A stretch of DNA of 64,000 nt. Source: Paraphysomonas bandaiensis (Eukaryota; Protista; Chrysophyceae). This document shows positions 2,392-61,003 of the stretch, piece after piece (position 1 is the first letter of the stretch; each line of letters begins with the position of its first letter). Below the pieces are notes generated by a model that did no database searches, was not told the DNA's origin, and saw nothing but the letters and a program-made list of their open reading frames with translations. The translations under genes were made by a program, and so were the position numbers. The stretch is from NCBI GenBank assembly GCA_965644295.1, contig CBFFRP010000127.1, positions 1-64,000 of the forward strand, in the 5' to 3' direction.

Positions 2392-5300
2392 TCAAATTCC
2401 AGGTGAGGTATTGGTTCGCTTCAACGCAGAACCCTTAGACAGATTGAAGCTCTCCCGGGACGGGGTTGGATCTGTCTTCTCCACCTCGGGGTTATCCTGG
2501 TGAGCAGCGAACTGGTTAAAAATTTGCTCAAGAGTGGTCTGACCAACTGAATAATCTTGGATATTTAGGCGCTCCTTGGCATCTTCAAAGTTGCGGAATA
2601 CACTCGCAAGAGCCATCTCTTTGGTGGGGATGCGATATCGGAATGAATGCGCTGTACTGCGCTCCAACAGAATCGCACCAGGGAAACTACCAGACATAAA
2701 GCTGTCAAGGCGAATTGCATCGTCCTGTGCAATCCACCACTCTAAAAACGTACGAAGTAGGACAAACCCATCAGCATGCATCATGTCGTACAATGTACCC
2801 CCTTCACCATTTGGTACAATCATATCCGCACGCTCGGGTTCGAGAAGTGCAGCACATAAGCTCTTCCAATCAGAAGTAATTCGTATACGGTTGAACCATG
2901 CCTCTTCCGCATCTTCATCACCAGCGTGTCCATTCTCTACACCATCATGGCCGCTCTCGTCTAACTGAATGTTATGGAGGTTTACTAATCCCGCATCACT
3001 TAATTGGTCAGCCAGTGGTCGCATGGCAGTCATAGTAGCGAAGTTAATCTTTATATCTACTTCATAACCATCTCCGAACCGTTGCTTTAAGTGTTGACCA
3101 GATCCAAGGCAACGCAGGCCACCATTTACCATTATACCAATTCGAGTACACAAGGCTTCAGCTTCCTCCATACTATGTGTAGTGAGAATTATAGAGCAGA
3201 GAGCATCTTGAGTAGAAATGCGGCTAATAACCTGCATGCAAATTGCATTATGCTTGCGTAAAACATAATGTAATATATCTCTACAAGAGTAATATCTCAT
3301 ATACTATTAAATATAAATAAGTCAAAACAATGCCACCAAATAATAGGTGAAATTCGGGTACCTGCCACATAAACCGCCTCGCCATTGGGTCCATTCCAGT
3401 ACTAGGCTGAAACAACACAGATCACGTGCGAAAACAATTCTCCTCAGCAAAACTACTACCTCATCCAGAAATATAATGGAAGGCTCTCCAATCATTGCAA
3501 TAGCAACAGAAAGTTTCCTGAAAAATTTAAGTATTACGAAACGAGGGTCCATGATGACTGTTACATCAATATGCACTGGCCACAAAATCAATATGACATT
3601 CATTTCAAAAGCAATGGCTGACAAACAAAATGGAGGAGAGGAAAGAATACCTTTTATTTCCTCCAGATAAACTCCCAGCAGCTTTGTGCTCGAAATCAGT
3701 GAGATTCATTTGTTCAAGTTTACCGCGGACAACTTCCTGCAGCCTATCTCCTTCCATACCTTTGATGCGGCCATAAAGCTCCAGATGTTCTCTCACAGTC
3801 AATAGTTCCAAGAGAGCATCGAACTGACATAACATAAAAACATCAGTGCAAAGCAACAGTTGCAGTGTGTCGCAACCTACTCGAGGACAGTGTACCACAT
3901 TTAACATATGTAAGCAGACATAATATGAATACTGAACACTTTACACAGTCATACCCATAACCGTAGATTCAAACGGGAACAATGTCATAATTTTACAATA
4001 GTATTCAATAATACCTGAGGACAGTATCCAATTTTTCTGCGAATGTTTGACTGATCTAACTTGATATCATACCCGTCAATGTATGCGGTACCAGACGTCG
4101 GTGGGAATTCACCGGATAAAATCGACAACGTAGTTGTCTTTCCTGTTAACAGTATCAACTCTAAATGAAATACAATGGAGGTGACGCCTTTTATTAAAGG
4201 TCAACCTAATTGCAGCAAGATGCACATGCAACTGATTACTAGTTCTTTTCAACCTACCTGCACCATTGATACCAAGAAAACCGAAACATTCCCCTTTCGG
4301 AATTCCAAAAGCTAACGACTGAACGGCAACTTTCTGACCAATAGGAGTATTAAACACTTTTCTCATTTCATCGATTTTGACAACATCGCCATCAGCATCG
4401 CCACGCTTAACTCGTTCGCGTTCGCGAGCGACGTCTTCGTCTTCAGGTGTTTTAGGATCATGTCCGGCATCGTTTACCTTATGCAGCCACAATAAGAGAC
4501 TAGGAAATGTTAAGGAATATTCCGTCATCAAAGCCAGCCCAAAGTATACCACAGTTTCAACAGCAAGAAAAACCAAATTCGCACCCACAACATTCCAGTG
4601 GTAAGGGGAAACAGTGGAGTCCCAGTCATACCCCTCTCTTGAGATGTTAGGGCAATCCTTGCCATTGTCGCAAAGAGCAAGTTGAGTCAGACCGTCACCC
4701 AAGCAAAATGATGGAAAAAGTCGGAAGAGATATCGTAAATCAACCGCAATCGACTCTGTGCTGTTAATATTGGTGAGAACAAAGGATACTACCATCAAAC
4801 AGAGGCCAGAAAGAAAATTAAAGAACATGACCACCAGCTGGGCAGTGGAATGGGACGTGAATATAAATGACATTAGGTACGTAAATGCAGCAACTGCAGG
4901 TCCAAATAACAGAAACAAAAGGAAAGTTGCAGTTCCACCGTCATTTTTGGTGTAATTGTCCACCCCGAAGGCTAACACAATGCATATTACAAGTGCCACA
5001 GTCGGTAAATACGATAAAACGTCCCATGCGAATGTCGAAAACCAGTAGGCATATATAGAGACGCCACTAATAATTTGCTGATGCTTTGCTTTTACCTCTT
5101 TCTCCTTCACAATGAATGCAGCGTAAGACGCGGGAATAAAGCAAAATGCGATCATAAAAAATAGCGCCGCAGTAAATGCATCAACAGATGCTGCATTGTT
5201 TTCTTGTTCCCACGTGCGCGGAAGAGGATAGTTCCTCACCGTGATACTTGCCGCACCAACACCAGTGAGCACTTGAAGAAAGGCCTCATGAACAAGATTC

Positions 5301-8300
5301 ATATATACGCCAGCACCATGCACAGCACTTCCATTAATCATTACGTTGTAGCTTAAGTCGTTCAATGTTGATTCGCCAGCGACAGTTACCGATCCGTAGT
5401 GCGATGATCCTTTCTGGCCCTTGGGCTTAATATTCTTTATCATGTAGTTGCTTGAATCGAAAAGAGGCGCCGCGCCCTGACTGCAGTTGTAGAATTCGTC
5501 TTCTTCAGGTGTAATCGGTACTGCTAAACCCCACACTCCCCCTCCATCAGTCCCATCGTTTTCGCCATCAAAGTCACCATTAAATCGACTCATGATCTGG
5601 TCCCCCAGAGTACCATCTTCGGTGTTGAATACAACATAGTTGCGGTCAACTTTGTTTTTCAACGGGTTGTATTTACCAGGAGTCAAAGTCAACCCAGGCT
5701 GATTAAAGCCAGGTTGCAATTGTAAGAGCCCTAAACCAAGCACAACTAACAGAACGGGCAGCACAACTTGGCAAATAAACATACGGCGATCACGCTTGCC
5801 ATATATCACACGTTTCAAAAATAAAGCACGGAAGTGTTTGAAAAACACCGCAGAATCAGTATCTGTCTCAAGTGAGCCCACACCAGCATACTTATCAGTA
5901 GTTACAGATTTTTCGGCAGATACAATAGGGGACATAACATCATTATCCCCCGAGGAGTTTACCTTTTGCGGACTTTCGGCAGAACCATTTTCTTTATCTT
6001 GTAGTGCGTCTTTGCTCTGAGCAGACCCCGAACGTTTCCGCTCTTCTACAAAACCAACGATAGATTCGCGTTCAACAATATCCTCGGTATTCTTTCCCAC
6101 ACGAATAAACACTTCTTCAAGCGTAGTAACTGAAATACCATACTCGGCAATCCCAAGAGTACTCTTCTTCTGATCCATCTCTGTAAACATATCGACAAAC
6201 ACAGGAGTAGCAGAAAAAGGTAGGCGATAAGATTGTTCAGCACCAACAAGACTCAAAGGCTCCGCCTGAGGCACATATTTCATCACCAAATCCTTGACGC
6301 CACGAGCAGTGCTGCCAGCCTGAGACTCACGAACAATTGTAAAGGTGTATCCTACACCGTAATTCTTTTTGAGAAAAAGAGAGGAGCCGAAGCATCGTAG
6401 CTGTCCCTCAGCCATAATGGCAATACGATCACCAAGAATATCCGCTTCCTGAAAAATAAAATAAATACAACATCGAAGGCGCTAGACTATAACAACATAC
6501 ATCCATGAAGTGAGTAGTCATAAGAATAACACGATTCTTTTTGTTACGCTGAATGATGTTCCACGTTGACCTTCTTGAGTATGGGTCCATACCAGAAGCT
6601 ACAATGAGATAAACTTTTAAAAAAGTGATTATCAGTACAACAGCGCTTACTTGGCTCATCGAGAATAACAACTTTCGAATCGCCTATTAAGGCAATACCA
6701 AGAGATAACTTACGCTTCTGACCGCCAGAAAGCATAGAGCTCTTAATATTAGTCTTTTCTTTCAGACCAACCTCTCGTATCATTTTCGTTGCAGCAGCAT
6801 CGACTTCACTTGACTTTACACCTTTAAATGCTGCATATATCTGAAGATGCTGCATCACTGTCAAGTCGGGAAACAAAATGTCATGTTGAGGGCAAACACC
6901 GAGCGACTGACGGATAAACTGCATATCCTGAGATATTCTCTTTCCTTCCACAATGGCGTCTCCTGATGAAGGTGGGATAAGTCCTGTCAACATACTGATC
7001 GTTGTAGATTTCCCTACAAATCAACACACTTAGATCACGCTTTAGACCAGCCGAGGTATTCGTACCTGCACCATTATGGCCAAGGAGCACAGTGCATTGG
7101 CCTACGTTGGCGAAAGTAAGAGAACAGTTCTGTTACGCCAATCGCTTATTTACCTTCGTATATATCCATACTGAGATTCTTAACAGCCACCCGATCCTCG
7201 GCAGTTGTTTGAAAAACTCGCCGCAAATTACGTATCATCACACAGCGGTTCTCTTCTTGCTGCCGAAGTAGATCGTTCGAAACGGGTTCAATTTTTGATG
7301 TATCTTCTTCGCTACTCGCAACTCGTTCGCCAGCCGCCAGCAGACTTTCCTCCTTAGCCGAGAGTTTAATGCCGCACCAGTCTAATACACACAAAAATGT
7401 GACATCATAAAATACAGAAAATGGATAATTATGAACGTACACGACGGCAAGAAAGGAAAATAGAAAGGCTTCTGAGTTCCGTATTCAGATGGAATTATTT
7501 TATCGAAATACCACGCCAACACTCCATAGAGAACTGCATCCACACACATCATAGTGACGCACAATGCATAACTGAAATTAGACGTCATTTCGGACGAATT
7601 TGACGTCTGCACACCGACGAGTCCACCTTCGTAATCTGCAAATACATTTGCCCCTAGAGCAAAGCAGGAGGGAGCCAATAAACAGGTAGCAGTTTTGACA
7701 CTCGTGCTATAGCTGGGATCAGAGACAGCGTAGTATGGAAAAAAAGTTGCAAAGAATATCATGGGACCCATAAGAGATGCGATCTTAGACCGAGAGAAAA
7801 AAGTTGACATCAGAAAACACATGTTGATAACAGCTAGTGAAAAAGCCATAAAGTATATGAACACCAGAAACTTGTCAGAGTACTCAAACACACTCGTCAT
7901 AGTAACTAAAACAATCAGCAGACTGACAAGAGCCATCTGTGTAACAGTCGTAATTAGCCATGACATGTTGTAGGCAAATTCCGTTAATCCCATCATCTTC
8001 ATACCCTCCTTAATTCTGTCCTCTTTCTCCAATACCAAACCACGAACTATCCGGCTGACAGGGTAGAGGAAAGAAAGCATATAGAATATACCAAGAGTGG
8101 AAGCAATCACGTACTGAAAATCGTCAGTTTCATACTTTTTCGTAGGCATCAAACCCATAGAAGCCATGATGTTGACATCCGAGCCATACTGCGAGAATAT
8201 ATATCTAGAAACGAAGATATTAGACACGATGAATACAGGGCCCAAAAGGGAGGCCATATGATTAAAATCCTAACGAAGCAAGACAATTACACTTACTTGT

Positions 8301-9336
8301 CCATTACCAGTTGGAGAGTAGAGAAGCCCGAATAAGAATATCCATAAATGAACTCCATACTCTGTGGTTTATATAAATCTTGAGTGTAGAATTGCGTACT
8401 CGGAATGGAGTAAATAAAATCACAGGAGTAAGATTCATTATTGCCCCCGCCGTAGAGACATGCGACTGTGTCATCGTTATCCGCTTCCCACGGGTAGGAA
8501 TAGTTAGTACGAATGGCATATTCCCACTTTATTCCTGCAACATCAGCCTCATAGAGCATAATTCCAAGTCCAATCTTTCCCCACTCATAATCCTCATCGT
8601 CGTAATCTTTATCTGTCATGTAGTTATCCATTTCATTTTTAGATTTGAACAATTTAATAGTTTCAGCAAAATCTTGACTCGTTTCCTCAAGAATATATGA
8701 AGATAAATTCTGACATTGGGAATAGAGTTCATCACTATAATGCACCGGAGATATCGCAAGTATAACATTATTCAGCTGCAAGCGTTCCAGGATGTTGTAC
8801 ATGGGCAAAGATGGGTTATCAGTACCAGTCTGCTCGTACAACTGCGATTCATCACCAACAGTAAACGCTGTAATTCATATTAGGATCACAAAATATGCTT
8901 CATATACTACACTTACTGTAAAAGGGATTGTTGGAACTGCCATAACTGGCCGCACTGTCGACATAGCCGTATTGCTCATACAGCTTCTCTCCTGTCCCAG
9001 ATCGAAAGCTTCCTCGGTAATAATTGCTTTCAGAGCAACCTGCAGGTTTCTCCAGGCAAGTAACAGGTGTAGAGTCATTAGTAATATCAGATGTATAGAA
9101 CCATGGATACTGAGAAAAGAGCATTACAAAAATGAAAACCTTCACAAATAATCACTCACAGCATTTCCACAGTAATAAGCTATGTTCGGAGAATCATAAG
9201 AGCTGGTAATCTGCTTGATCAGAATGAGCAAGGCCATGAAAAGCACAGGCAGGAGAATTTCCGCAGCAGTGCCCCATGGATGAGCAATTTTGAGAAGGTA
9301 ATTCTTCCATAATATAGCCTTGAGCTGTTTGGACAT
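2392..9336 (-). CDS. ABCA: Full-size ABC transporter subfamily A (TMD-NBD-TMD-NBD), multi-exon
   Basis: N-terminus [13 protein letters not shown]...AEILLP; NBD1 [28 protein letters not shown]; NBD2 [27 protein letters not shown]; C-terminal QTTLEQIF; GT-AG introns. Confidence 0.95.
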
Positions 9337-9924: not shown

Positions 9925-10914
9925 ATGGACATGAAGAGAGTGGCATTAGCTGCATGTCGGACTGCTATGCAAACAGCTCCAGCTGCTCAAGCTGAAATGA
10001 ATCTACTTGTGAAAGCGCTTCGAAATTATAATGTTCAAGGTGATGTTGTTATCTGGGGCAGCCAATCGGTAAATTGGAAAAGCTATAGTTTGGTGATGAT
10101 TTGTCAAACATGGGACTATATCGACTGCCTGACTCCTTTTATTGAATGGTGCGACAGGGTTTCTAAGGTCACAAAATTGTTTAATTCTCCAGCTGTTGTT
10201 CGATGGAATTCTAACAAATTTTATCTTGAAGATTTAAAAGCAGCTGGTGTGAGAACAATGCCATCGGTGTTAGTTAAATCCAAAGTAGAATGGAATAAAC
10301 AAAGCCTCATGCGTGAACTTTTCAGTCGTCAGTGGTCCTCCATTGTTATTAAGCCTACAGTTGGGTGTGATAGTGATGGCGTAGCATTCTTTAATAGTCT
10401 GAGTGATAGTTGGTTTGAGCATGCCATGTATCTCATGGAATCCGGTCATGATGGAGTTCTTATCCAACCTTTTGTACATTCTATAAAAACACATGGGGAA
10501 GTGTCACTAATTTTTGTAGACGGTTCTTACAGTCATGCTGTGCGTAAATATGTTGGCCCTGGAGAGTTCCGAATTCAAGAGCGGTTTGGAGGGGGGTATG
10601 AACCATTTGAACCAACTCGTGACATGCTTGACACTGCGTCGAGTGTTATTTCGGCACTTAGAGAACTAATCATGCCACGGGAATATATTAACGGGGTACT
10701 CTACGTGAGGGTTGATCTGATGGGCCTCTGTCAAAATGGTTATAATCTACAGTGGGTGGTTGGAGAGGTCGAGATGGTGGAACCATTCCTTTATTTGATC
10801 CAGTCGTACGACTCCAATAATATACACGTGTCAGACGAGAGTAATGGGTCGGCCACTGCCGATAAGATTGCAGCTGCCATTGTACGTCGTCTAAATCGGA
10901 CTATATATATTTAA
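9925..10914 (+). CDS. ATP-grasp ligase, bacterial RimK/glutathione-synthetase-like (DcsG-like) family; intronless
   Basis: Motifs TWDY, WNSNKFYL, IKPTVG, LIQPF, GEVSLIFVDGSYSHAVRK, FRIQERFGG, YVRVDL, EVEMVEPFLYL. First ATG at 9925. Confidence 0.85.
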   Translation: MDMKRVALAACRTAMQTAPAAQAEMNLLVKALRNYNVQGDVVIWGSQSVNWKSYSLVMICQTWDYIDCLTPFIEWCDRVSKVTKLFNSPAVVRWNSNKFYLEDLKAAGVRTMPSVLVKSKVEWNKQSLMRELFSRQWSSIVIKPTVGCDSDGVAFFNSLSDSWFEHAMYLMESGHDGVLIQPFVHSIKTHGEVSLIFVDGSYSHAVRKYVGPGEFRIQERFGGGYEPFEPTRDMLDTASSVISALRELIMPREYINGVLYVRVDLMGLCQNGYNLQWVVGEVEMVEPFLYLIQSYDSNNIHVSDESNGSATADKIAAAIVRRLNRTIYI

Positions 10915-11343: not shown

Positions 11344-12520
11344 TTAATTTTTTCTAGAAAACGATCGCTCTGCGCTCTTGACTGTATTCTTTAGAAGCAT
11401 CGCTATTGTCATAGGACCAACTCCACCCGGGACAGGCGTGATGTGCCCAGCAACCTATACACCTTTTAACACAACACAAAAGAAGTTACACTTTTACCTC
11501 CTTGCATGACTCAAAGTGACAGTCACCCACAAGTCGGTATCCTTTTTTAGTCGTCTTATCCTGCCAATCATACCCATTAGCAATAGCATTCCATTAATAT
11601 CATATTAATACCTCAACGGAGTTGATACCCACGTCAATAACCACCGCCCCCGGCTTCAGCCACTCTCCTTTCACCATTTCCGCCCGGCCCACGGCCGCAA
11701 CGACGATATCAGCTTGGCGAACAACCCCAGCAATATCTTGCGTCCGTGAGTGTGCGATTGTAACTGTGGCATTGCGTTGCATCAGAAGTAGAGCAATAGG
11801 AATGCCAACGATATTGGAACGGCCAATAACAACAGCACGCTTGGACTCTATCCCACAACCTATGCGGTCAAGAAGCTCAATTATACCCTCAGGTGTGCAA
11901 GCTACATTGAAGTCAAGTGCATCGGATGTCCACGCATCGCGTGCAGCTTTGTGGGTGTTGGTCTGATTTAGACGGGCGACATTCAGAGGGTGTAGACCGT
12001 CCACATCTTTTTCAACTGCGATCTTCTCAATAACGGTTTGCTCACATATGTGAGTCGGAAGAGGGAGCTGAACTAGTATGCCATGCACATCTTCTTTTTT
12101 ATTCAATTCATCGACTACAGAAACATGACAAGGTAGATGTTAGAAAAGCAAGATACAAGATACGAGCTTACTCTTATTAAGAAGTTCACTTTCTGAGACG
12201 TCAGATGGGTAGTCGACACTAAAAGACTCCACTCCAATCTCTTTACATGCCTTCTTTTTCGATTTAACATAAGTTGCGGAGTCTCGTCGGTCGCCAACAA
12301 GGACAACAGCAAGCCCTGGCTTATGCGCCATTTTGCTCACTTTTTCCTTCAGTTCCGAACGGATTGCTTTTGCCGTTGCAACTCCTACAATTAATTATCA
12401 CGATTTCCGGACAGATGATCGTAAACGCTTACCATCGATGATATTTCCAGCTGATGAAAATGGCCGCACAGGATTCAGTGTACGCACCAAAGGAATGGTC
12501 TTTCTTATTAGTCGTGACAT
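11344..12520 (-). CDS. folD: Methylenetetrahydrofolate dehydrogenase/cyclohydrolase (FolD) with probable mitochondrial presequence, multi-exon
   Basis: [75 protein letters not shown]-terminus [23 protein letters not shown] is Arg/Ser-rich with no acidic residues. Confidence 0.95.
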
Positions 12521-13101: not shown

Positions 13102-15689
13102 ATGTATACCAAAAGAATATTTACATCTATCAGATCTTCTAGTCTGCAGCCATCACTGCTCAGTCGCAATGCGCTTCTGTCGAGGCCCATGTCTAAGTTC
13201 GTGTGTCTGGATCCCGTGCCCTCAGATATAGACATCAGCCAGGCTGCTACTCCTAAACACATTTCGGAAATCGCTGAGAAAAGTGGACTCTTGAGTGAAG
13301 AGTATGAGCTGTATGGTACAACAAAGGCGAAGGTGGTGTGTGCATGTGTGCTGCTATTGTGTAATTATCATTCAGGTGTCCCTTGCTGTTCGAGATCGTC
13401 TAAAAGATCAAGAAGATGGAAACTATGTCCTCGTTACAGGAATTAACCCCACACGTGAGTTAATTCTTAAAGAAGCCAATACACAATACAGCTGTTCTAA
13501 TTGCTTCTATACTCAGCTCTTGGTGAGGGTAAGTCAACGACCGTCATTGGTCTAGCACAAGCACTCGGGGCCCACATGGGTGTCAAGGCATTTGCTAATA
13601 TCCGACAGCCTTCACAGGGTCCTACCTTTGGTATGAAGGGTGGTGCTGCTGGTGGGGGATATGCACAGGTGTTCCCCTATATTTGATTACTTTTAGTCCA
13701 AGGTAATTGCGTTTCTACTACAGGTGATACCTATGGAAGAGTTTAATCTGCACCTAACGGGTGATATCCACGCGGTAACTGCGGCTAACAACTTACTAGC
13801 AGCAGCTATTGACACCCGTATGCATCATGAGGCTCATCAGGTTTGAGTCTTATTCATATCTGTCTCTCCCAAGCGTCACATACACTTTTATTCTTGTTTC
13901 AGAGTGACCATTCTTTATTCAATCGTCTGTGCCCGAAGGACAAGAAAGGAAACCGCAAGTTTGCTCCAGTTATGCTGCGCCGTTTGGAGAGGCTTGGAAT
14001 CAATAAAACGAATCCAGATGATCTCACTGATGATGAGATATCTCGTTTTGCCCGGTTAGACATTGATCCTGAGACTATCACTTGGCAACGCGTGCTCGAT
14101 GTCTGCGACAGGTAATACTTTATACCTTACAGTTGCGGGGATATCAATAATGCCTGGATGTAGATATGTTCGAGGAGTGACTGTTGGTGTTGGGAAGAGC
14201 GAGAACAGCCCCCGCGCGACGGGTTTTGATATCTCTGTGGCCTCAGAAGTTATGGCTATTCTAGCCCTGACAACTTCCTTAGAAGACATGCGCGAAAGAT
14301 TGGGCCGCATTGTTATTGGCATGAGCAGGTGAATTTTATTCTTTTTACTTTGTAGTGTGTTCTGCTGTCCTTGGTTTAATTTGGTCGGCAGAGAAAGCAA
14401 AGGTCGCCCATCGATGCCAGTCACTGCTGATGATCTCGGCGTTGGAGGGGCCATGCTCGTACTGATGAAAGATGCTATTATGCCAACCCTCATGCAGACC
14501 ATAGAACATACCCCAGTGTTAGTGCATGCCGGGCCATTTGCTAACATTGCCCACGGTACGACGACGACACATTTCTTTTATTGTGTAACTGCTTTCATAG
14601 GGAATTCCTCAATTGTGGCGGACCAGATTGCTCTCAAGCTTACAGGCAGCGAAGGGTTCTGTATTACGGAGGCAGGATTTGGTATGACTTTTCTTTTTCT
14701 AAATATGGTATCAAAGTATGACTGGTTTTTGAATTACAGGAGCTGATATCGGCATGGAAAAGTTCTTCAACATTAAGTGCCGATATTCCGGCCTGAAGCC
14801 TCGTTGTGCTGTTATCGTCGCAACTGTGCGCGCACTGAAATTACAGGGTGGTGGCCCCCCTGTGAGCTCAGGGAAGACACCTGACGCTGTGTACTTTAAC
14901 GAAAATCTAGATCTGGTGCGAGCTGGTTGTGCTAATCTTATTCATCACATCAAAAACGTGAAGAAACATGGCGTGAGGCCAGTAGTTGCTATCAACCAAT
15001 TCACAGCTGATACACCTGCGGAGATCGAGCTCATCAAGTCTCTGTGTATGGAGGCTGGTGCTTTTGCAGCAGAGGAGAGCAACCATTGGGCTAAGGGTGG
15101 TGAAGGATCCATCGGATTAGCAAAAGCTGTGCAACGAGCGTGTGCCGAAGCCAAAGCAGATGAGAAATCCTCGTTTGAGTTTTTGTATCCTCTTGAGACT
15201 CCCCTCAAAGGGAAGATTGAGAAGATATGCTCCTCAATATATGGAGCGGATGTAAGTGCATTACCTCTTTTATGTTAGACATCTTTTATCTGTTTTTATA
15301 TCGCTCTGTACACCACTCCAATTTAATTTCTCAGCAGGGTGTAGAGTACTCCGACTTAGCAAATCACCGTCTTGAAGCCTTCACGAAGGCGGGCTACGGA
15401 AACCTACCAATATGCATGGCCAAAACCCAATACTCTTTGAGTACTGATCCCAATGCCAAAGGTGTGCCCACAGGGTTTAAGATCAAGGTCAGAGATGTGC
15501 GTGCCGCTGTTGGGGCTGGGTAAGTACTGGGAAGTATTTTGCACGTTGTTATTGACCATTGTTTTGTGCTCCAGATTCATTTACCCAATATGCGGAGATA
15601 TTATGACTATTCCCGGATTGACAACACGCCCTGGATTTTACGATGTGGATATCGACTTCAAGACTGGAAGGGTTGTTGGACTCTTTTAG
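13102..15689 (+). CDS. fhs: Formate-tetrahydrofolate ligase with probable mitochondrial presequence, multi-exon
   Basis: [86 protein letters not shown], terminal GRVVGLF*. Confidence 0.96.
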
Positions 15690-15890
15690 TGACTCAAATT
15701 TCTAAGTACCTCACACTGCATCATTTCTTCTTTGTTTTTTTGTGGTGTGATCAAGTTACTAATTAACAAGTACTCTATTACTCCACTTTTCAGTGTTAAC
15801 TTTTTCTTTTGCGTGAGGAAGCAATGAAATTACAATTAACCCTAAATAATTTATGACCTTTAATGAATAGATTGTAGCTAACATATCGAG

Positions 15891-15953: not shown

Positions 15954-16339
15954 ATATCGAGAGACATTGGCAGCTACTATCTACTATGGTACTTAAGCTG
16001 TGCTTTTGCTGCGAAACCAACCGTTCCAGTATATTGCCTTGTCTTCATTCTTCTTGTCAATGTCACTGCACAGTACATTGCCTCCTCAAATGTCGATCAG
16101 TTTGCAGTCAAATTTCAATGGCAAAGTGGTTAATATCATTAGAAAGAAACAAGAGTACAGCATTCATAGGCCGGCAGTATCGTAACGTAATCATTTAAAT
16201 TCACGTTTCAAAAAACAGTTCACTTATTTACACAAAGATCAAGTCGTTACTATATACTATGATATTCCGTAAAGGTCATAAGCACAAAATAGCGCAAGAT
16301 AAAAAGTGAAAAAGAAAAATGCAGAATTTACAACTCATA

Positions 16340-16774
16340 TTACTCATTCAATTTCAAAAAGCACTCTCTCCACCCAATCGACTTGTAGGTATGGGTCAGC
16401 TCTTCATCCTTGGCAATGTCGCGGAGAGCAAACACTTCAAAGCGGTCCTCATCAAAGTGGCGAACAAAGCGGCAGTTCGGGTCTTTGGAAGTGTTGTAGT
16501 ACGTAGCTGCCCCAGAGCAGAAGGCCCATACAGTTCGATCTTCACTCCAGGTGAAAATGTACGGGTTTTCATGTCCATTGACATTGGTCAGACGACGTGC
16601 CATGCCGAATTCAACCAATTCCCCAGCTTTAAGAGCCACGGCTGCAAAAGCTCCATCACCACCAAGCGGAGATTGCTTGACGTACACCTTGGAGCAGTCC
16701 ATTTTAGTGTAAACAGTGAGAGGAGATTGGTTCACATTATCCTCCACGACCTGCACCTCGTTATCCATGTCCAT
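16340..16774 (-). CDS. Small single-domain SET protein (putative lysine methyltransferase)
   Basis: VYVKQSPLGGDGAFA, GAATYYNTSKDPNC, VFALRDIAKDEELTHTY. Confidence 0.85.
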   Translation of the reverse strand: MDMDNEVQVVEDNVNQSPLTVYTKMDCSKVYVKQSPLGGDGAFAAVALKAGELVEFGMARRLTNVNGHENPYIFTWSEDRTVWAFCSGAATYYNTSKDPNCRFVRHFDEDRFEVFALRDIAKDEELTHTYKSIGWRECFLKLNE

Positions 16775-22602: not shown

Positions 22603-22729
22603 TAGATAATTACGCAAGCTAAACGGCACCCTCTCTATTTAAACCACACAGAGCATGAATTATATCGTTATAGCGGTAGCAAATTACAGTACACGATTTC
22701 CAAATATATCTAACATTATCAATGTCTAT

Positions 22730-47384: not shown

Positions 47385-47862
47385 GAATCAGGATAAGTAT
47401 GTCAACGATGTCTCTGACTAAATCATAGTGAAGGGCTGTTAGATACGGCTATGTGTCGAGTAAGACAATGTCTAGATGTTAAGTGTTGTACTGTAAACTG
47501 CTGTATAGCTGTATGCTGTAGACTATGCATAGAGTATGTACCACACCCGGCCAGGGCATACACAGCGTACATATATATAACAAAGTACAGAGGAGAGAGT
47601 GGGGTTCACAGTATACATGATAATACAGTGCGTATACCCTGTGTTTGTGTTTTCATTATGGATAGCGGCGCTATCATCCACATCGCAGACCACATCACAA
47701 CATCACAGTGCAATAACACTTCGGCTGCAGGTTAGATAGGCTGGGTGGAGTATCAGCCACACCGGCATCTTACAAGCAGTTGACTGTATTTATAACCCAT
47801 CAGCAGTTATATCCATTTCTCTGTCGCGCTTGTTTCTCGGTGTTCATTAGCTGACTGATAGA

Positions 47863-48395
47863 ATGAGACACAGCGGACACCTAGATACGGTATTGGATCG
47901 TATTAACACTTCTGTAAGTCATGTTTACTCATGAATGTAACCTAATTTTAGTCATAGTCGTCAATTATTGTGTCCGGATTGTCATTTCTGTCAGTTATAT
48001 ATATGCGAAATGCTTTTTGTTCGACGTTATTCTTTGGGGCACTTGCGAATGCAGCATTTGGTAAGCTTTTAAAAATGATTGTATCAGCAGAGAGACCAAA
48101 AGAATCCAAACGACATGCTTCAACTCACGGAATGCCTTCATCTCATGCTAATTCTCTGTCGTTTTTTACTGCCTACTTAAGCCTTGCTGCATTTGAGGCG
48201 TCTTTTTCTCTCGGTTTAGTTATTTTGTCAGCAACTGTTGTATATACATGTTGTGTATGTTATTGCCGAATATACCGCACGCGAGATCATACTGTAGAGC
48301 AAGTTTTCGTGGGTTTGTGTATTGGTAGTATTTCAGGATGTCTAGTATATCTACATGTTCTACCGAAAGTTGAAGACTATGCAATGTCCATGTAA
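47863..48395 (+). CDS. PAP2-superfamily lipid phosphate / dolichyl-diphosphate phosphatase, 2 exons
   Basis: LKMIVSAERP, GMPSSHA, RIY...HTVEQVFVG; first exon MRHSGHLDTVLDRINTS followed by GTAAGT. Confidence 0.85.
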
Positions 48396-48700
48396 CTATC
48401 CCGCTTGTAATGCTATAAATATACTGTACATCTTTGGACGAGAGCTGTAGTGATTTTGGTTCTTGGAATGTTGACTATAAGCAGTGATTAGATGAGGACT
48501 CCTCGTATCATGATTCTATTGCACTTTTCTGTATTACCAAGATAGTTACAGAAATAAAAAATTACATATTCTAATAGAATACTTAGGTAGATATAGTAAG
48601 CCTAAGGGTATATATTAAGCGCTAAGTCCATACTACTCAGATCGTCCCATGAGAAGTAATAGTTCATAGTCGATTATTCCTGCTGATAATATAGAATATT

Positions 48701-50675: not shown

Positions 50676-51692
50676 TTAGGACATATCTCCTCCAACTCGG
50701 CGCAGGGCATCGGGAATATCATTGAAGTATCTGTGGACATACACATAAAAAGGAAAACTGAGGATGTCTGACTTTAGGTGTACCTGTGTTCACGTGCATC
50801 TTGCGCAGTAATTCGACGAGTGGGATCATATGTCAGCAGCGCACCTAGAAGCTCTACTCCGACCTCATCAAGATTAGGTACGACGGCGTTCAGTGAACTA
50901 GGAGGGGAATACGAAGGGAAGTTACCGCGCCACTCCGGGAGCTGAGAGACGCCCGGAAAAGTAGCTTCTGTGGGGGTACCCAAGTGACGAAATATCGTAT
51001 CCAATTGCGTTTTCTCAGAAGTGCCAGTAAAAAGCGGGGCCCCATTTACCATTTCTGCAAAGATACATCCTATGCTCCACATATCCACTGGAGTTGAGTA
51101 GTGCCGTGAGCCAAGAAGGACATCAGGGGCGCGGTACCATAGTGTCACAACCTCATGGGTATAACTCCTTACTGGAATACCAAACGCACGTGCAAGACCG
51201 AAGTCAGCTAACTTCAGTTCTCCTTCGCGGTTGATCAGCAGATTTTGAGGCTTAAGATCTCTATGAAGTACTCTATGATGGTGGCAGTATGCAACACCGG
51301 TTATCAGCTGGAATAAAAATGATTTCAATATTGTCGGATTAAGACCACCTTCGCACACATCTAAGTACTTCTTCAAATCTTGATCTAAATATTCAAACAC
51401 AAGAGTAAGCTTTCTTTCTGTGTGTACTACGTCAAAAAGGCGGACAATATTTGGGTGTCGCAACTCCTTCAGCAATGAAATTTCTCGAATCGCTGTTGAC
51501 GGAATTCCTACACGCAAACTCATTAGACCCAAAATCAGGACTACATTTGAAGCATTGAGGATCACCTTCATCCTCGGCTTCTAATCTTATTCTTTTCAAA
51601 GCAATTATTTGACCCGATACACGGTCTTTAGCTTTATATACTATTCCATAAGTGCCTTCTCCTATTTTTTCTAATTTTTGATATCTCTCCAT
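50676..51692 (-). CDS. CDKA: Cyclin-dependent kinase, PSTAIRE type, 3 exons
   Basis: [58 protein letters not shown]. Confidence 0.95.
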
Positions 51693-52645
51693 TGTAGGGA
51701 AGTGAATAGAGAGTCTGTAAGTCGATAGCTAAGTGAAACAAAAATGGACAAAAGATAGAGAGCTCAGTCACTCTCTATGATACCAGTCAAAGGACTACGA
51801 TAGACAGGCACAGAGTTGACCTCTGTAATAATATAATCCCCTGAAAGTATTGGGGAGGGTTTCAGGTCTATAGGGGGAGTTATTGTGATGTGGGGTAGCT
51901 GAAGTGAGATACAGGGATATATGCATGGCCTGTGGTGGTATACGGGAATCATATAGTAGGGTAGGGGGGATGCATCGTTTTACACCACAAATAGCAATGA
52001 GTTGTATTAATTTCCTTCCTATCATTTTTATTTACTTGAAATTGATTTGTTGTGAATATTTTACTTGACCCAAAAGAGAATTATTTTTCCAGAACCTTTA
52101 CACTATAAAATCCCACATTTTTCTATATAATATCTCGAAAAAACTCTACTATTAGGGAGATAATAACGAAGTCTGTGGAGCATATCTGCGGGCATGTTAT
52201 CATACACAACCATGAGAGTGATCAATGTCCAGTCGACGTTTAGATCATGAAATATGTAGAGTTAGCTCTAAAATAATGTGGACAAGTTGGAAAAGCACAA
52301 TACAAAACCCAGATATCTGTCAACAAATTTCTACCATACTATGAAGTGGATATTTTTTTTGACGTACGTATTTCTGAAGTAGTTGTATTTCCACCGTACG
52401 ATAATGGAGTGTGAAGGTGTGTGGTTCGTACACTTCTCTCTCGCTAAAGCTTCTGGATGTGATTTTTTCTTATGTCCACATACGCACATATATAATACAG
52501 TGGATCTACACGTATGAAGTAGATGTATACGTAGATGTATCTGTGAGCATCTGGCTGTGTGTATGTTTGTGGAAGTAATCAGAGCCAAGAAACAACACTG
52601 ATTGTCTTCAATTGCGTGTGGCGATATTTGAGAGACTAAATAATA

Positions 52646-54074
52646 ATGCTAGCAAGAGGATTACTGCAACGTGGATCTGCCACTAGACGCGCTTTCTCCG
52701 CTGCTGCAAAGCCTATCGTGAACAGCCACAATGAGTTTGACCCTCTCGAAGAAGTTATTGTCGGTAGAGTTGACGGAGCAACTATTCCAGAGTGGCATGT
52801 TTCTGGCAAAGCTGTCTGGCCGGAGAAGCACTGGGACATGTACAAGACTAAGGCCGGACAGCCTTTCCCGAAGCATTTGATGCAAGAAGGTGAACTGGTT
52901 GTCGTTACATCCCCAGTCGATGCCTCATAATAATAATCTATATTGCAGCCGCAAAAGAACTTGATAATTTTGCTAAGATTTTGGAGGCTGAAGGTGTTAT
53001 CGTTCGCCGTCCCGAAGTGCTTCCTGGTGACTTTAGTCAGGAGTGCCAGACCCCTGATTTTAAGACTAAGAGCGGATTGTATGCTGCCATGCCCCGAGAT
53101 GTCCTCATTGTCGTCGGTAACGAAATCATTGAAGCCCCAATGGCGTGGCGTTCTAGATACTTTGAATTCAGGCCTTACAGAAAATTGATTAAAGATTACT
53201 TCCATAAAGGTTCGAATATTAATGTCACGACTAGGTTTTCAGCCTAAATAAATCTGTAGGAGCCAAGTGGACCGCCGCCCCAAAGCCGCTTATGTCTGAC
53301 GACCTTTTTGTTCCTGAGGATAAATTCAAAGTGAATGAGACAGGCGAATTTGTGACCACTGAATTCGAACCTGTTTTCGATGCCGCTGAGTTCACACGTA
53401 TTGGTAAGGATATTTTCTGCCAGCGCAGTCAAGTTACGAACGAGTTTGGAATTGAGTGGATGCGCCGTCATCTGGGCCCGGAGTACAATATTCACGTCTT
53501 GGACTTCCAGGATAAAAATGCTATGCACATCGACGGAACCTTTATTCCGATTGGTCCTGGCAAGCTTTTGGTGAATCCCAAAAGGCCTTGCATTACTGGC
53601 GAGAAGCAAAAGACTTTCACATATGAGGGCAATAAGAGAGATTATCATTTACCTTCCATGTTCAAGGGATGGGATATTTTCATTGCGCAGACTCCACTTC
53701 TGGCAGCAGACCACCCGCTGTATTTTACCTCCCCATGGACTGCCTCATGCAATATCATCATGCTTGATCATGTAAGAATATCGTGGTTTTGTTTTCTATC
53801 ATAGTTCTCATAGTTCGCCCGTTTACTGCTACATCTGACTTTATGTACAGGAGCGCGTCGTGGTGGAAGCGCACGAAACTACAACTATCGAGGCCTTCAA
53901 GAGCTGGGGGTTCAAGCCTGTCCTTGTCCCATTCCGTAATTTCCTTCCATTTGGTACGCCTGCTTGCTGCGTATATAGTGTGCGATTACTGACTAGTATG
54001 TGTACGTAGGCGGTTCTTTCCACTGCGCGACCTGTGACATCAGAAGGACAGGAGAACTTCAATCCTACTTCTAG
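52646..54074 (+). CDS. GATM: L-arginine:glycine amidinotransferase family enzyme with probable mitochondrial presequence, multi-exon
   Basis: [72 protein letters not shown]. Confidence 0.92.
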
Positions 54075-54371: not shown

Positions 54372-55303
54372 CAGGGCTAGGAACAATATATTGCAATACT
54401 ATTAGTAGATAGCGTTCCATCAATACTATTTATGGAGATTTTAAACAGGCTCAACAATACAATTACAATATATTGCAATATATTAGTATGACTAATCAGT
54501 AGGTAAACACATATTGAGAGAAGTTCTGTACATATATGTGTGCAGGGGTGCAGAGTACTGTTTGAGCTGGCTATACATAAAAATAGAAAATAACATCAAA
54601 AATAGGCTATTTTTCCGGTTATTTGAATACATAGACTTATATTTTGCACCCTCAACTAAGTCGGACTCTCACCTTTTCGTGGTGTTCTGGGGGATAAGTA
54701 CCGGGGAGAGATTCTCTCTGGGAAATTAAAGTGAGCCTCAAGCATATAGTCAGCAGATAATTCTCTGTCCACTCATAGCCGAATGCTTGTGTGTTACAAG
54801 GGACACCAATAAGTGTCACTTGTGTAGACGTCTTTGGGCCCTGACGAATAAACAGGCATCCGGGAATGGGTCCACCGTCCACCTCAAGGGCATCCAGGAC
54901 AGCGCCCACCTGAAGGGTAACCGGGGTATTGGGCTGCCTGCTGAAGTCAAGCATCCGGGATGTTCACCTTAAGAACTCAGAGCGGAAGTGGTCGCACATT
55001 GGTGCTTGCGGCGACGCACAAGCAGCTTCCGTAGCGTTAAATAGTAGGATAAAAAAAGTGTGTACTGACTAGTTACAGGTAGAGGTCTAACTAGTTTGTC
55101 TAGCATTCATCTACTAGCTACTAAGTTGGTGCAGGTTTTTAACGCCTATTGCTAATAATAAGACTTTCAATATACTTATATTTTGCACCGTACAGTTAAG
55201 AATCATAATATTGATTGCAATATATTGAGAGCCACTTTAACAGAAACAATATCGATGGAAATTTTGGGCATCACCAATCAATATTGTTTCCTCGGCAGCC
55301 CTG
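54372..55303. mobile_element. hAT-like non-autonomous element hosting a nested SINE-like insertion
   Basis: Ends CAGGGCT.../...AGCCCTG; left end CAGGGCTAGGAA matches the 15891 MITE; flanks ACCCGGAT/ACCCGAAC (6/8 match); CAATAT-rich subterminal repeats. Confidence 0.65.
54649..55173 (+). mobile_element. SINE-like retroelement copy (~525 bp) with 14-16-bp TSD
   Basis: ACTTATATTTTGCA(CC) at 54635-54650 and 55174-55189; same 5' start (CCCTCAAC) and 3' end (AAGACTTTCAATAT) as 22098-22602. Confidence 0.88.
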
Positions 55304-55570: not shown

Positions 55571-57195
55571 TTAGACATATGTCTCCTTACAGAACCCTGG
55601 CTGAATCGCTCCAGGGTGAAACCCGCGATTAATTAGGCGACATCTCTGCATAGTGATGCGCTCTTCAGCGTCATCGACGTCCACAACGGTAGAAGGACTC
55701 CAGAGCCGCTCACCAACTGAAGCAGCACGAGGATACACAATGCCTTCAATGTTATTCTCGTCGATATGTTCCCCCCACATGCACACTTCACCACCGATGA
55801 TCAGTTGCGCTTCAGTTTCCGAGAGTCCTACTGTTGGGTCATAGGAGTACATTTTATCCCACGTGTTGTCTGCATGACTGCACAGAAAAAAATTAATCAC
55901 GTGTACACATAAAATATTCACCCAAAACATAACCACAATGCAAAAATAATTATATCTTATATATGACTAGCACGCAAGACTTACTCCAGGTACCACACAT
56001 CCGAAGGGGCGGCAATAACTTGGAAGCCCTTTGCGACAATACTGGATACAACATCCATAGAAGTCCACACCTGGAATATAACGTCAGAACCCACATCACA
56101 GCCTGCTTTGAACACTTCTTCCCAGTGTACAGGAGTCGCCCCTAGGGCACGGGTAATGTCATCTGCTTTTAGAACGAAATACTCGAGCAGCTGGTCATAC
56201 GATGTCATGCCATTAGCATCCATGAAATTTACAATCGAGGTATCGTTGGCCCAGCAACCATAGACAACTTCATCTCCCCCCAGGTGGAAATTCTTGACTC
56301 CACTAGCACCAATAATGTCACTTACAACTTCACCTACGACAGTGTACGTTTCATCCTTTGTTGGGTTCAGTGCAAAGTCGTTGATATTATAAGAGTACTT
56401 CACGAAACAATCCGCCATGACGTCAGGGTACCCAGCAGTCCAGGATGCAGCATGGCCAGGTACATCAATTTCTGGAAGCAGGCGTACACCTCGGTCAGCC
56501 GCGTAGGCGGTAAGGGCAGAGATATCATCCATAGAGTACGTCAGTTTAGGAGAATAAGCACCCTTTACAAGATCAGGAGCGGAGGGTGTGTCAACAGGAA
56601 AGGATTGCGCATCGACCATGTGCCAGTGAAGCACATTGAACTTACTCATCACGAGAGTGTCAACCATGCGCTGTATTTCGCTGACAGGCAAGTAATGTCT
56701 CGAGGAGTCGAGCATGAACCCGCGGTGGGTGAACCGAGCATCATCTGAAACATCAACAGGAAGATAGGATGCGGTAACAGTACCATCATCGGAACGGGAC
56801 AACAGTTGAGTGAAAGTTTCGAATGCTCGCAATGAACCCCATACTGTGGAAGAGTGTATGGTGCACTCCCCATCTTTTGAAACGGTTAGCTCATAGCTCT
56901 CATCTACTCCCAGCTGAAGAGTTGATGGCTCATCGTCATGCGTCTCATCCACAGTCACCGAGCAAGCCGAAATCCCTCCTGTCGAACCAGAGCTACTGGC
57001 ACCGATGAGTTGTTGATATCTCTCCACAGCCTGATCGAGGAAAGCGGACTCTTGGTTGAGTTGAAAGGTGAACCCATTGGATAAGCTCAAAGAGTCTGAG
57101 CCCACACTGAACGAGAGCGGCTGCGGCCAAAATGGAGACGAGACTTGTTCTCCAAAAACGCTTGCCAACACACTACCTAAAATCAGAGATTTCAT
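55571..57195 (-). CDS. Beta-hexosaminidase (GH20), secreted/lysosomal, 2 exons
   Basis: Signal peptide; RFTHRGFMLDSSRHY, NVLHWHMVDAQSFP, PEIDVPGHA, HLGGDEV, IGGEVCMWGE, YPRAASVGERLWS. Confidence 0.95.
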
Positions 57196-57710: not shown

Positions 57711-60700
57711 ATGTCACGAACAACAACTGTCCGAACTAAGTGCGCTGATAACGAGCGTATCGCTGCTCATCTTCTTGACGTGCTGCATAACAAGACATCA
57801 CCTGGACCGAGTACTTTTAAGTTTGCTCTCAAGAAGGCAATCAAGAGTGTCTCTGCGTACCCTCTGCCGATAACCACAGAGCAGGATGCACTGTCATTGG
57901 AGGGTGTTGGGCCGGTGTTGTCCCGAGAGATCATGAAGGCTGCTCTTACCACTGTATCCGTTCCTCCTCCTCCTGCTGCTGCTGCTTCTGATGTACCTTC
58001 CATTAGAAGAAAACCGAACAGTTCTGACAGTGGAACTCCTCGTGATTCCACCACCGGTTTTACCAGTAGAGTATATAAACCAGAGCAAGGAAAGGGACCG
58101 TGGGCTATCATGATATCGCTTAGTATTCTCAATTGTCCCAGCACGAAGCAGCAAATACTAGACTGTATTCGAAGCAATGGTTTGGAGGTACGTCTATATG
58201 CTTATGGTGTCTTTTTCTTCACCAAATATCTGACTTAGTTGCACGAATCATGTAACAATCTTGCGGGAAGTAAATGGACAACTGCACTAAAAACACTCAC
58301 GTCCAAATCTCTGGTGGAATCTCAGCGCCCGTCAACAGTGTCGCTGTCTAACCAGATGGAATTTTACCTTACGGAATATGGTGCAGAACGCGCAATGGCT
58401 TTGAGAGGTTGTAGTGTACGCAACAATGGTAGCACAGTCGCACGCCAACTGGTTGCGTGTGATGTGCCACAAAGCTATTCCGATCCAGGTGATGCTTCTC
58501 TCGCTGCGAAACGCGATGAACCATCCGATATGTTGTCGACAAGAGTTGATGAGGAGGTTGGAAGTACATTTGATCTCACTGCCTGTGGCAACTCTGGCGA
58601 TGAGGAGTTCATAATGATCTTGTCATCCGATGATGAAGCCGCACCACAGTGTTCGGAGTCAATGAATGGGGGCTGTATTCCGGGTGTTAGAACTTGCGAT
58701 CCCTTGGATTATAACCGGAAAATTACTAAAGAATCTAAGTTTGATCGTACAGAGGTTACTTGGGAGGGCAATAGCGACAATGGTGCAAGCACCGTTCTAA
58801 GTTTAAGAGAGCGAATTGCCGCGAAGTTTACATCTCATTCACCAGTGGACGTAAAGTTCAGCCAATGCAATGGTAACTATGAGAGTAATAAATGTAGAGA
58901 TTTATTCACGACAGAGGAATATGATATTGATTTGACACAAGATACATGCGATCAGGCGGAACAAGCACAAAGTAGTGTTGGAAGCAAGCGCAAATTACCT
59001 GATACGATTGTGACGCAGCAGTCATCATTCCCACCCACCGTACGCTGTTCTAGCTATGATTGCCCTATTTCTATAGATAGTGATGAGGGTCCACCATCTC
59101 CAACTTCGCCACCTCCAATTCGTCGATCACTGTCTACTGAAACTCATTCTTCGCCTCCACTTTCAATCCTGCCGGAATGTGTAAATTATGAGTCAAATGT
59201 TTTGTCACAACCAACGACAAATAAAGAGCTTACATCGAGACGAGAAAAAGTCACGAAAAAGAAACGGGTAGCCAAATTTAATTCAAGACCAGATGTAAAT
59301 ATCTACCGTGGTGGTGCGGCTACATTCATGATGAATCAGTCGAAGCGCTCTGATGATAGCCCACCTGGCAGTAAAAGCGACCAATCATCTGGCACAGATA
59401 ACAAAAAGAACACCGCGAAGAAAAAGTGGAATGTTACAGAAGGTTCATGGGAAGTTGTGATGCTTATCGACTGGAGGGAAAAGGACTACCGGTTTATTGA
59501 GGCGTTCATGTTGCAAAAGAATGTTCGAGTCGAGGTGCTATAACTGTATGCTGTATGATGAAATGATTAAGTTTACTTCATGTGGTAAATTCGAATTACG
59601 TGTGACCTGGTATTATATCTTATACTGTCGCTATTGACTTGGCGTGCTTAAAATTTATCACATTATTGCACTAGGTGTGTCAACTTGCTATTGGAGATTA
59701 CATGTGGGTTGCGAAACAGCGAAAATATCCTTCTAATGGAAATGCCTTAAGCAGTGGAAATTTGATGCGACACGACACCGAACTCGGGGGTAATAGTATG
59801 CTCTCACAAGAGGAAGATATGAGAAGTGTGTATAGTATAATTAGTGACACGAGTTCAAATGGATATACAAGTGACAGCTCCAGCAGTGGTAATGCGTCGA
59901 CGGCCCGTAAGGTGCGAAACAAGAGTAAGAAACAAGCACTGCAGGATGCACAACGTAATATGGCAGTACTGGACTGTATTGTGGAGAGGAAAACCGTTTC
60001 TGACCTAGCGTCGAGTATCCAGGATGGTCGATACGATGAGCAAAAGCAACGACTGAAATGTTGTGGGGTTGAACACATTGTTTATCTTGTGGAAGGCCAG
60101 TCGCTGAACCCTCAAGGGGTGGGGGTTGGTTTTCGCCATAAGGCGAAGAATAAAGATAGGTTCTTAGTGCAGTGTAGTGCTGGGGCGAGTGTGACATCCA
60201 GTACAATATTGACTGCGATGGCAGCTACGCAGGTTATACGTGTAGATTGTGTGTTATGTTGTGGTTGTATGTATCTCTCCTGATGTCATGAACATAGGCC
60301 ACTGGGATTGCAACTGGCTTGTGTCGAGATCCTGGAGCTATTGATAGTGAGTGTGAGGAGAATGAGTGCAGTGGTATGGATAATCAGTTCAAGATGCATG
60401 TGGTACAGACTCGGGGTATTGATCACACCGCGATGCACCTACTCTACCTTCACAGGTACTATTTTTAAAGTTTGTTGTATTCGTTCGTTTGTTGCGTATT
60501 CATATGTAGATGATGCACTCAGTTTCCACTTGTGTGTTGTTGTAGGCAAGTAGAGAAACGGTTCTTTTCTCGCTGCAATTCGTCCGACCACTCTAGTATT
60601 GGTCATTCGTACACCGATTTGTTTGACTTCCAGTCTAGCAGCTCACGCAGTAATCGCCTCACAGATGTAGGGCAACTGTTTATTGCTCAGTTACGCCAGG

Positions 60701-61003
60701 CCAACGGCTGTTCCGTTAGTGCAGCGAAATCCATATCAGCTAAATTTGGAGGTACAATGAGGAATATGAATACTACGCTCCGAAGTATGGTTCCTGTTGC
60801 AGCTAAGGTTAGTTAGCCGTGTTTTGTAAGTCGGTTCTGCCGAAGGAATAGCATGTTCATAATGCTAATTTGCTGCGTAGGACTCCATTGCTCATTTGAG
60901 AAAAATTGGTCCAACAGGAAATATGTCTCGAATAGGCCCGAAGCTTGGAAGTTTTATGTCCAATTTAATGTTGATATCTGAGCTCCCGAAGCCGAAAGGA
61001 TAG
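57711..61003 (+). CDS. MUS81: Crossover junction endonuclease MUS81, multi-exon
   Basis: N-terminal HhH (KKAIKSV..YPLPI...LEGVGP); YKP..GKGPWAI winged helix; ERCC4 domain [41 protein letters not shown]; C-terminal HhH2 ([16 protein letters not shown]). Confidence 0.92.

Follow-up and report, generated by a model that had tools for sequence, protein, structure and literature searches.

In Nannochloropsis gaditana the majority of genes are divergent with respect to the neighbour on one side and convergent with that on the opposite side, the longest alternating run reaching 15; many of its divergent spacers are shorter than 1 kb, and experiments have demonstrated bidirectional promoters (VCP). 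This alternating bias is described as common to photosynthetic stramenopiles and as not evident among non-photosynthetic ones (Jinkerson et al. 2013, PMC3566019). For Ectocarpus the tendency has been described as "strong", with an alternating proportion "greater than 60%" and 61.7% of the genes that flank intergenic regions adjacent to transcription start sites arranged in divergent pairs. The median divergent intergenic region of this genome spans 409 bp, as opposed to 2293 bp for tandem ones, and close divergent pairs share a nucleosome-depleted region (10.1101/2020.03.09.980763; 10.1101/2024.02.19.579948). Here we analyse gene orientation in the non-photosynthetic marine chrysophyte Paraphysomonas bandaiensis (assembly GCA_965644295.1, 62.56 Mb in 669 contigs), focusing on the first 64 kb of contig CBFFRP010000127.1 (hereafter the window), in which 20 successive protein-coding genes switch strand from each gene to the next.

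The alternating-orientation bias itself has been documented before in stramenopile algae related to this organism, and a literature search on the orientation of chrysophyte genes yielded no paper. What looks new in this organism is the apparent strength of the bias and its occurrence in a colourless ochrophyte. The data presented below indicate that the window probably represents the normal gene layout of this genome, in which the orientation bias described for ochrophytes is taken to an extreme.

Gene orientation in the window and in three other contigs

An earlier note on this stretch, made from the sequence alone, had reported twenty consecutive genes alternating perfectly in strand and forming ten head-to-head pairs. 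All 20 protein-coding genes were found on the strands given there and in the same order, and their alternation has no exception (Table 1). The genes are not strictly consecutive, since two additional transcripts, here called Y and Z, occupy the 2,830-bp spacer between the SET and LtrA genes. Coding potential was mapped from hexamers, with long open reading frames (ORFs) as the training set and tandem repeats masked beforehand (a satellite of 16 kb as well as (ATGT/TACA)n arrays). The map outlined exactly 20 alternating strand blocks between positions 2395 and 63988, and a simple hidden Markov model (HMM) gene finder with fixed coding and background models recovered 19 of the 20 genes, missing only PAP2. 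Pfam scans were run on open exon pieces one by one, with PDB sequence searches where Pfam was silent, and spliced joins (the model of Z and the coding sequences of the gene finder) were used in local scripts only, never as search queries. Matches in Pfam or PDB backed 19 of the 20 names in the earlier note. The remaining one, a proposed nucleoside hydrolase ("NH"), returned no Pfam or PDB match in these exon-wise scans, though its coding potential on the minus strand is clear. The genome is compact, with a G+C content of ~42% and short GT..AG introns whose median length is near 70 nt. The alternating run stops at MUS81(+), which is followed by another plus-strand gene without a Pfam match, and only weak coding signal was detected to the left of the ABCA gene.

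To place the window in its genomic context, stretches of 50 kb each were taken from contigs C1, C20 and C90 at arbitrary coordinates and regardless of orientation, bringing the total sequence inspected to 214 kb. Genes in these stretches were curated by combining coding blocks, HMM predictions, Pfam matches and repeat mapping, with transposon genes removed. Strand switches were observed between 28 of 32 adjacent host genes (88%, 95% confidence interval 71-96%; p=1e-5 against a rate of 0.5 and p=0.0015 against 0.62). Under the harshest splitting, in which each doubtful same-strand gap counts as a gene boundary, 26 of 35 adjacencies switch (74%; p=0.003 against 0.5). The C90 stretch contributes 14 host genes, among which V-ATPase D, a kinase, VIT1, ChaC, DDX23, PRKCSH, Spb1 and Snf7 were confirmed; all 13 of its adjacencies switch (p=0.002 against 0.62), and the run is bounded by the sample edges. 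The C20 stretch presents 8 switches in 11 adjacencies after removal of a young transposon, a PIF/Harbinger-like element, a short interspersed element (SINE) and a solo long terminal repeat (LTR), and the C1 stretch presents 7 in 8, with an E1 enzyme gene followed by an F-box/ankyrin gene as a true tandem pair. Tandem neighbours do exist (E1/F-box, GNAT/myosin and MUS81 with the gene that follows it), and the longest same-strand run of host genes in the sequence inspected comprises two genes, or three if a weak piece at C20 40840-40950 is counted.

These results bear on the statistical argument of the earlier note, which had assigned the pattern a probability of 2^-19. That figure relies on the wrong null, as it assumes 50:50 orientation where the base rate is ~0.74-0.88. 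At a switch rate of 0.88, a given 20-gene stretch has a ~9% chance of alternating perfectly, so the window appears ordinary for this genome and not a special locus. The strand-switch rate that the same note had proposed to compute, determined here as a three-contig sample, lies well above 50% and does not single out the window as an outlier. It is conceivable that the genome switches at an ordinary or Ectocarpus-like rate (50-62%) and that the window is merely its longest run, picked afterwards. The pattern was indeed spotted post hoc, and by our own calculation some 19,000 genes switching at 62% would be expected to contain a longest run near 19 somewhere. Such a selection effect is nonetheless very improbable in view of the switches counted in three stretches chosen blind to orientation, one of which alternates throughout.

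A metagenome contig (VFQN01004880.1, L025:1-11958) provided a further instance of this layout: when scored with the coding model of the present genome, its 12 kb resolve into eight strand blocks that alternate without exception. It encodes a FolD protein 72% identical to that of the window, and it probably derives from a related protist with the same layout, although as a single contig it is an anecdote. Within the window, the two halves of C1-tetrahydrofolate (THF) synthase, dehydrogenase/cyclohydrolase and synthetase, are encoded by separate head-to-head genes (folD and fhs, 11486-15775). The earlier note had proposed looking for conservation of the pairs in relatives, and this was not found around folD: neither fhs nor the ATP-grasp or SET genes were detected beside folD relatives in any of 80 metagenome loci, most of which are short or bacterial and hence constitute weak evidence.

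Head-to-head spacers and the transcripts between SET and LtrA

The divergent spacers of the window, measured from ATG to ATG, span 588, 668, 2830, 387, 317, 584, 468, 466, 1122 and 515 bp, so that in nine of the ten pairs (at most 1122 bp) the genes lie on opposite strands with their starts close together. The values listed in the earlier note (588, 581, 2830, 387, 317, 599, 462, 478, 953 and 515 bp) are reproduced within start-codon choice. With the 2,830-bp spacer excepted, divergent spacers (317-1122 bp) are significantly shorter than convergent ones (571-2818 bp; Mann-Whitney p=0.005). The features of an ochrophyte-type bias are hence present, with switching above 0.5 outside the window and, within it, divergent intergenic regions shorter than convergent ones.

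Divergent spacers are also 4-6x enriched in GTAT/ATAC-type words. Long, pure arrays with (ATGT)n, (TATG)n or (TACA)n as their unit, each measuring 0.3-1.4 kb, were identified in the comparison samples (L003:8621-9981, L007:9698-9987, L009:4671-5428 and L013:8151-9277), and all four sit in head-to-head gaps. The (ATGT)n arrays are open in all frames and, together with a 15-bp satellite, contaminate an unmasked coding model.

Transcription of the SET/LtrA region was assessed with RNA contigs from four transcriptome-type runs (spliced and polyadenylated, unstranded), which targeted this spacer and cover few of the pairs. The contigs revealed transcription of fhs, SET and LtrA, to which a polyadenylated transcript contig (L017) adds the lysozyme gene, and showed that the 2,830-bp spacer holds two extra transcription units, Y and Z. 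The minus-strand orientation of Z follows from the CT..AC joints of its contigs. No ATG-started ORF of at least 40 aa was found in the local spliced model of Z, and the longest one in Y encodes a hydrophobic peptide of 66 aa for which there is no database record. No Rfam families or tRNAs were detected in the window, Y and Z included, and neither transcript was seen as a dispersed repeat among the matches listed. Both look like non-coding RNAs on the basis of their sequence.

The 5' end of the SET RNA maps to 16893 and the left end of Y to 17194, while the 5' ends of Z and LtrA (~19531) lie under ~400 bp apart. The RNA contigs outline separate transcripts whose 5' ends are spaced by ~30-300 bp within a short promoter region common to both. 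Because Z runs away from the LtrA start, it constitutes the divergent partner of the LtrA promoter. The left end of Y and the 5' end of LtrA carry an identical CATGCATCA..TCAGA sequence, with a mirrored copy just upstream of the SET 5' end. Instances of CATGCATCA map to 16955-16963(-) for SET, 17195-17203(+) for Y, 19496-19504(-) for Z and 19524-19532(+) for LtrA, the Z copy presenting one mismatch. Three exact copies in 2.8 kb compare with ~0.07 expected, and the copies lie in sense orientation at or near 5' ends.

The sequence shared with the LtrA 5' end is the sole evidence that discriminates between the two possible orientations of Y, and it indicates that Y probably lies on the plus strand. 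A metagenome scan with a 30-mer found nothing pertaining to its strand, base skews conflict and 3'-end motifs do not discriminate. With Y on the plus strand, the order SET(-)/Y(+)/Z(-)/LtrA(+) alternates and the run comprises 22 units in all. The earlier note had named missed co-oriented genes in the spacers as grounds for refuting the pattern. Missed transcripts do occur; Z preserves the alternation, and Y probably does so too.

As a general promoter motif, CATGCATCA had to be discarded, since instances with one mismatch are equally frequent in divergent spacers, other intergenic DNA and genic DNA; it is a local feature, unenriched at other promoters. An ATGCAT core was likewise rejected as a mark of divergent spacers, as it occurs outside them too. 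A further exact copy of CATGCATCA is located at 33009-33017(-), in the 1.7 kb across which the genes for the ABC1 kinase and the small-exon kinase face each other tail to tail, where its sequence could mark a hidden minus-strand transcript.

The finding of Y and Z raises the question of whether the alternation is partly an illusion of annotation, with small or non-coding units hidden in long gaps and a much lower alternation among true units. Two transcripts that had gone unrecognised came to light in the one gap for which RNA was consulted, and convergent and tandem gaps extend over 1.4-4.9 kb, some of them single-copy and without coding signal. Of the units uncovered, however, one fits the alternation and the other probably does, and the RNA contigs contain ~70% of the words of the 25.6-31.6 kb region, close to the share expected from the known genes by themselves. 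Dispersed repeats, moreover, account for four long gaps. Repeats were detected in four of six searched convergent gaps and in none of seven searched divergent spacers (hypergeometric p=0.02), suggesting that long tail-to-tail gaps are largely insertions rather than missed genes. We consequently deem this explanation improbable, if less so than a selection effect.

Annotated features and mobile elements

The features identified in the window are compiled in Table 1.

Table 1. Genes, transcripts and dispersed repeats of the window, with supporting evidence.
Feature	Position	Strand	Evidence
ABCA-type ABC transporter	2392..9336	-	ABC2_membrane_3, ABC_tran, R1_ABCA1 on exons; HMM model
ATP-grasp protein	9925..10914	+	GSH-S_ATP E=9e-6; coding score 158
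folD-type methylene-THF dehydrogenase/cyclohydrolase	11486..12520	-	THF_DHG_CYH_C E=6e-41
Formate-THF ligase (fhs), to transcript end	13189..15775	+	FTHFS, several exons; spliced RNA contigs, GT..AG intron 15519-15573
SET-domain gene, small, single exon	16200..16893; coding sequence 16340-16774	-	SET E=8e-11; unspliced RNA contigs 16200-16893
Transcript Y, unspliced, apparently non-coding	17194..17888	probably +	RNA contigs in 4 runs
Transcript Z, spliced, apparently non-coding	18294..19500 (5' limit approximate; contigs to at least 19115)	-	Three CT..AC joints
LtrA-family membrane protein (transcript)	19531..21376	+	LtrA E=1e-10; two GT..AG introns in RNA contigs, which end in a poly(A) tail at 21376
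SINE-like dispersed repeat, tail-to-tail gap after LtrA	22091..22612		At least 13 copies, 92-94% identity
DEP-domain pyridine-nucleotide oxidoreductase	22809..25308	-	DEP, Pyr_redox_2
GH25 lysozyme (transcript)	25655..26620; coding sequence 25696-26457	+	Glyco_hydro_25; polyadenylated 978-nt transcript contig L017
Young dispersed repeat, tail-to-tail gap after lysozyme	26657..27621		At least 24 copies, 91-96% identity
SDE2/SPRY gene	27927..29989	-	SDE2, SDE2_2C, SPRY
ABC1 atypical kinase	30307..32004	+	ABC1 E=2e-52
Protein kinase, many small exons (AGC kinase in the earlier note)	33669..35003	-	Pkinase E=7e-4, one exon; coding block
PHB depolymerase-type esterase, internal duplication	35588..37764	+	PDB 2d80 E=9e-52; Esterase_PHB weak
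Dispersed repeat, PHB depolymerase/"NH" gap	38780..40260		At least 40 copies, ~70% identity; 186 candidates; odd composition
Gene of unconfirmed family ("NH")	40583..41900	-	Coding scores 63 and 85
Protein kinase (MAP2K in the earlier note)	42369..44872	+	Pkinase N- and C-terminal parts, two exons
C2-domain protein	45477..47384	-	C2 E=4e-8
PAP2 phosphatase	47851..48526 (limits approximate)	+	PAP2 E=2e-9
CDK-like kinase	50676..51728	-	Pkinase E=2e-59
Glycine amidinotransferase (GATM)	52646..54074 (HMM end)	+	PDB 1jdw E=2e-43, residues 207-325 of 423
SINE-like dispersed repeat, tail-to-tail gap after GATM	54617..55183		At least 40 copies, 91-93% identity
GH20 beta-hexosaminidase	55571..57195	-	Glyco_hydro_20 E=7e-72
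MUS81-type nuclease	57711..61003	+	HHH_8, ERCC4
Gene after MUS81	63207..64000	+	Coding scores 55 and 23; HMM gene

Two other ORFs were considered as genes and rejected. A minus-strand open frame at 53973-54209, which would have been a second minus-strand gene beside GH20, falls to noise under the cleaned coding model and is further weakened by GATM, which requires ~98 more residues there. The other, a plus-strand ORF of 181 aa (39252-39797), falls within the bounds of a dispersed repeat. The PHB depolymerase gene harbours a near-identical internal duplication (36150-36300 and 37280-37420) that includes an intron, indicating that a whole exon-plus-intron module was repeated.

Among the dispersed repeats of the window, the one at 38780-40260 fills half of a 2.8-kb tail-to-tail gap. 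The young repeat at 26657-27621 contains an internal 28-bp tandem array (TRF 27255-27362) whose unit number varies among copies (~95% identity).

Several mobile or repetitive elements were identified in the comparison stretches. A Ty1/copia element on C90 (L013:1678-6165), located in a convergent gap, contains an intact ORF for a 1,496-residue polyprotein (gag, zinc knuckle, integrase and RVT_2) and is probably an active LTR retrotransposon, judging from this intact ORF. The PIF/Harbinger-like element (L007:4750-9580) encompasses a DDE_Tnp_4 transposase gene between long inverted arms (4750-5800 and 7713-9580) that are 100% identical, and a second copy with 97-98% identity was found on C435. 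The satellite on C1 has a 15-bp unit (ATCTTATATACACAT) and spans at least 16.4 kb (53,593-70,000; L005:3593 to the end of L006), reaching the sample edge. Its start immediately follows exon 1 of a thiolase-like gene, and it imitates coding sequence in naive ORF scans.

Interpretation of the alternating layout

The arrangement described above can be accounted for if neighbouring genes are almost always placed on opposite strands, which would generate two kinds of intergenic DNA. The first would be a short head-to-head promoter region, of ~0.3-1.1 kb from ATG to ATG and rich in GTAT/ATAC-type repeats, and the second a longer tail-to-tail region of 0.6-2.8 kb in which retroposons and transposons can insert without harm. 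Paired genes would each retain their own start site, with both starts placed back to back within one short promoter region, and a promoter without a coding partner would appear to drive a divergent non-coding transcript, as suggested by Z opposite LtrA and, probably, by Y opposite SET. By analogy with Ectocarpus, the two starts of each pair may share a single nucleosome-free promoter. We infer that the pattern is maintained by selection against tandem layouts, in which a promoter lies next to a terminator.

The earlier note had envisaged a genome built from two-gene bidirectional transcription units. Its alternating layout recurs in the independent sample, but the notion of units goes beyond these data: the transcripts are separate, and tandem neighbours occur. 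Separate transcripts would also be compatible with insulation without sharing, whereby alternation avoids read-through from a neighbour's terminator and head-to-head genes are regulated independently. Nine of the ten pairs are functionally unrelated, every gene has a 5' end of its own, and tandem neighbours, where present, are spaced by gaps of 1.4-4.9 kb, all of which would fit this explanation. Start sites placed back to back, down to ~30 bp in the case of Z and LtrA, and the presence of divergent non-coding partners suggest instead that the promoter regions are intrinsically bidirectional, and close divergent pairs in Ectocarpus have one common nucleosome-depleted region. Insulation alone seems less likely than not, and is the strongest of the alternatives considered.

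Several observations weigh against regarding the window as the normal layout of an alternating genome. Beyond the window, the sample is of modest size (134 kb usable, 32 adjacencies) and its gene calls are crude and author-made, and the 26 switches in 35 adjacencies obtained under the harshest splitting do not significantly exceed the rate of Ectocarpus (p=0.09 against 0.62). A minus-strand Y, the less probable orientation, would introduce one break. RNA covers one spacer, and seven other long gaps outside this coverage, among them those at 32.0-33.7, 48.5-50.7 and 61.0-63.2 kb, could hide co-oriented units. Transposons on C20 occupy a head-to-head position, so that the confinement of repeats to convergent gaps is not absolute, and functionally related genes make up only one of the ten pairs (folD/fhs).

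The layout of P. bandaiensis shares with N. gaditana both the alternation of neighbours and the short divergent spacers. It differs in extent, since the maximum of 15 there refers to a whole genome, whereas runs of 20 genes (probably 22 units) and of 14 genes were found here within 214 kb, and in that N. gaditana is photosynthetic. As in Ectocarpus and other brown algae, divergent intergenic regions are the short class; the alternating proportion of >60% in those algae compares with 74-88% outside the window here, and chromatin evidence is available for them alone.

In animals and yeast, head-to-head pairs comprise a minority of genes. The bidirectional promoters of these organisms resemble those proposed here in that two start sites are placed back to back over a span of a few hundred bases, with a non-coding transcript as partner when there is no upstream gene, as with Z, but in P. 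bandaiensis head-to-head pairs look like the rule. The polycistronic arrays of kinetoplastids, of which the earlier note had called this layout the opposite, also reflect a genome-wide non-random rule of orientation. That contrast was borne out: kinetoplastids present long same-strand arrays with rare switches, whereas long same-strand runs are absent from the 214 kb inspected here, where the strand switches at nearly every boundary and each gene has a transcript to itself.

A bolder version of the preferred reading, according to which alternation is near-obligatory, is possible, although we consider it somewhat short of an even chance. In this version alternation, with non-coding partners included in the count, would reach at least ~90%, with all promoter regions bidirectional, all terminator regions convergent and partnerless promoters yielding divergent long non-coding RNAs; apparent tandem pairs would hide partners, and retroposons would survive almost only in convergent zones. 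If true, near-obligatory alternation would go further than any other rule of orientation known from the nuclear genomes of eukaryotes whose genes are monocistronic, and would provide a clean system in which to ask why gene orientation is selected.

Gene orientation in eukaryotes is usually near random, and promoter sharing, read-through avoidance and compaction are candidate causes of departures from this state. With about nine in ten neighbours switching strand, this free-living protist would offer a much sharper test case than the ~60% of brown algae or Nannochloropsis, and its colourless lifestyle indicates that the trait tracks ochrophyte ancestry, not photosynthesis. Orphan promoters in this genome seem to yield divergent non-coding RNAs, and mobile elements accumulate in tail-to-tail gaps. 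The layout also predicts gene strands and promoter positions, which may aid annotation, and its compact two-way promoters could be of use in genetic tools.

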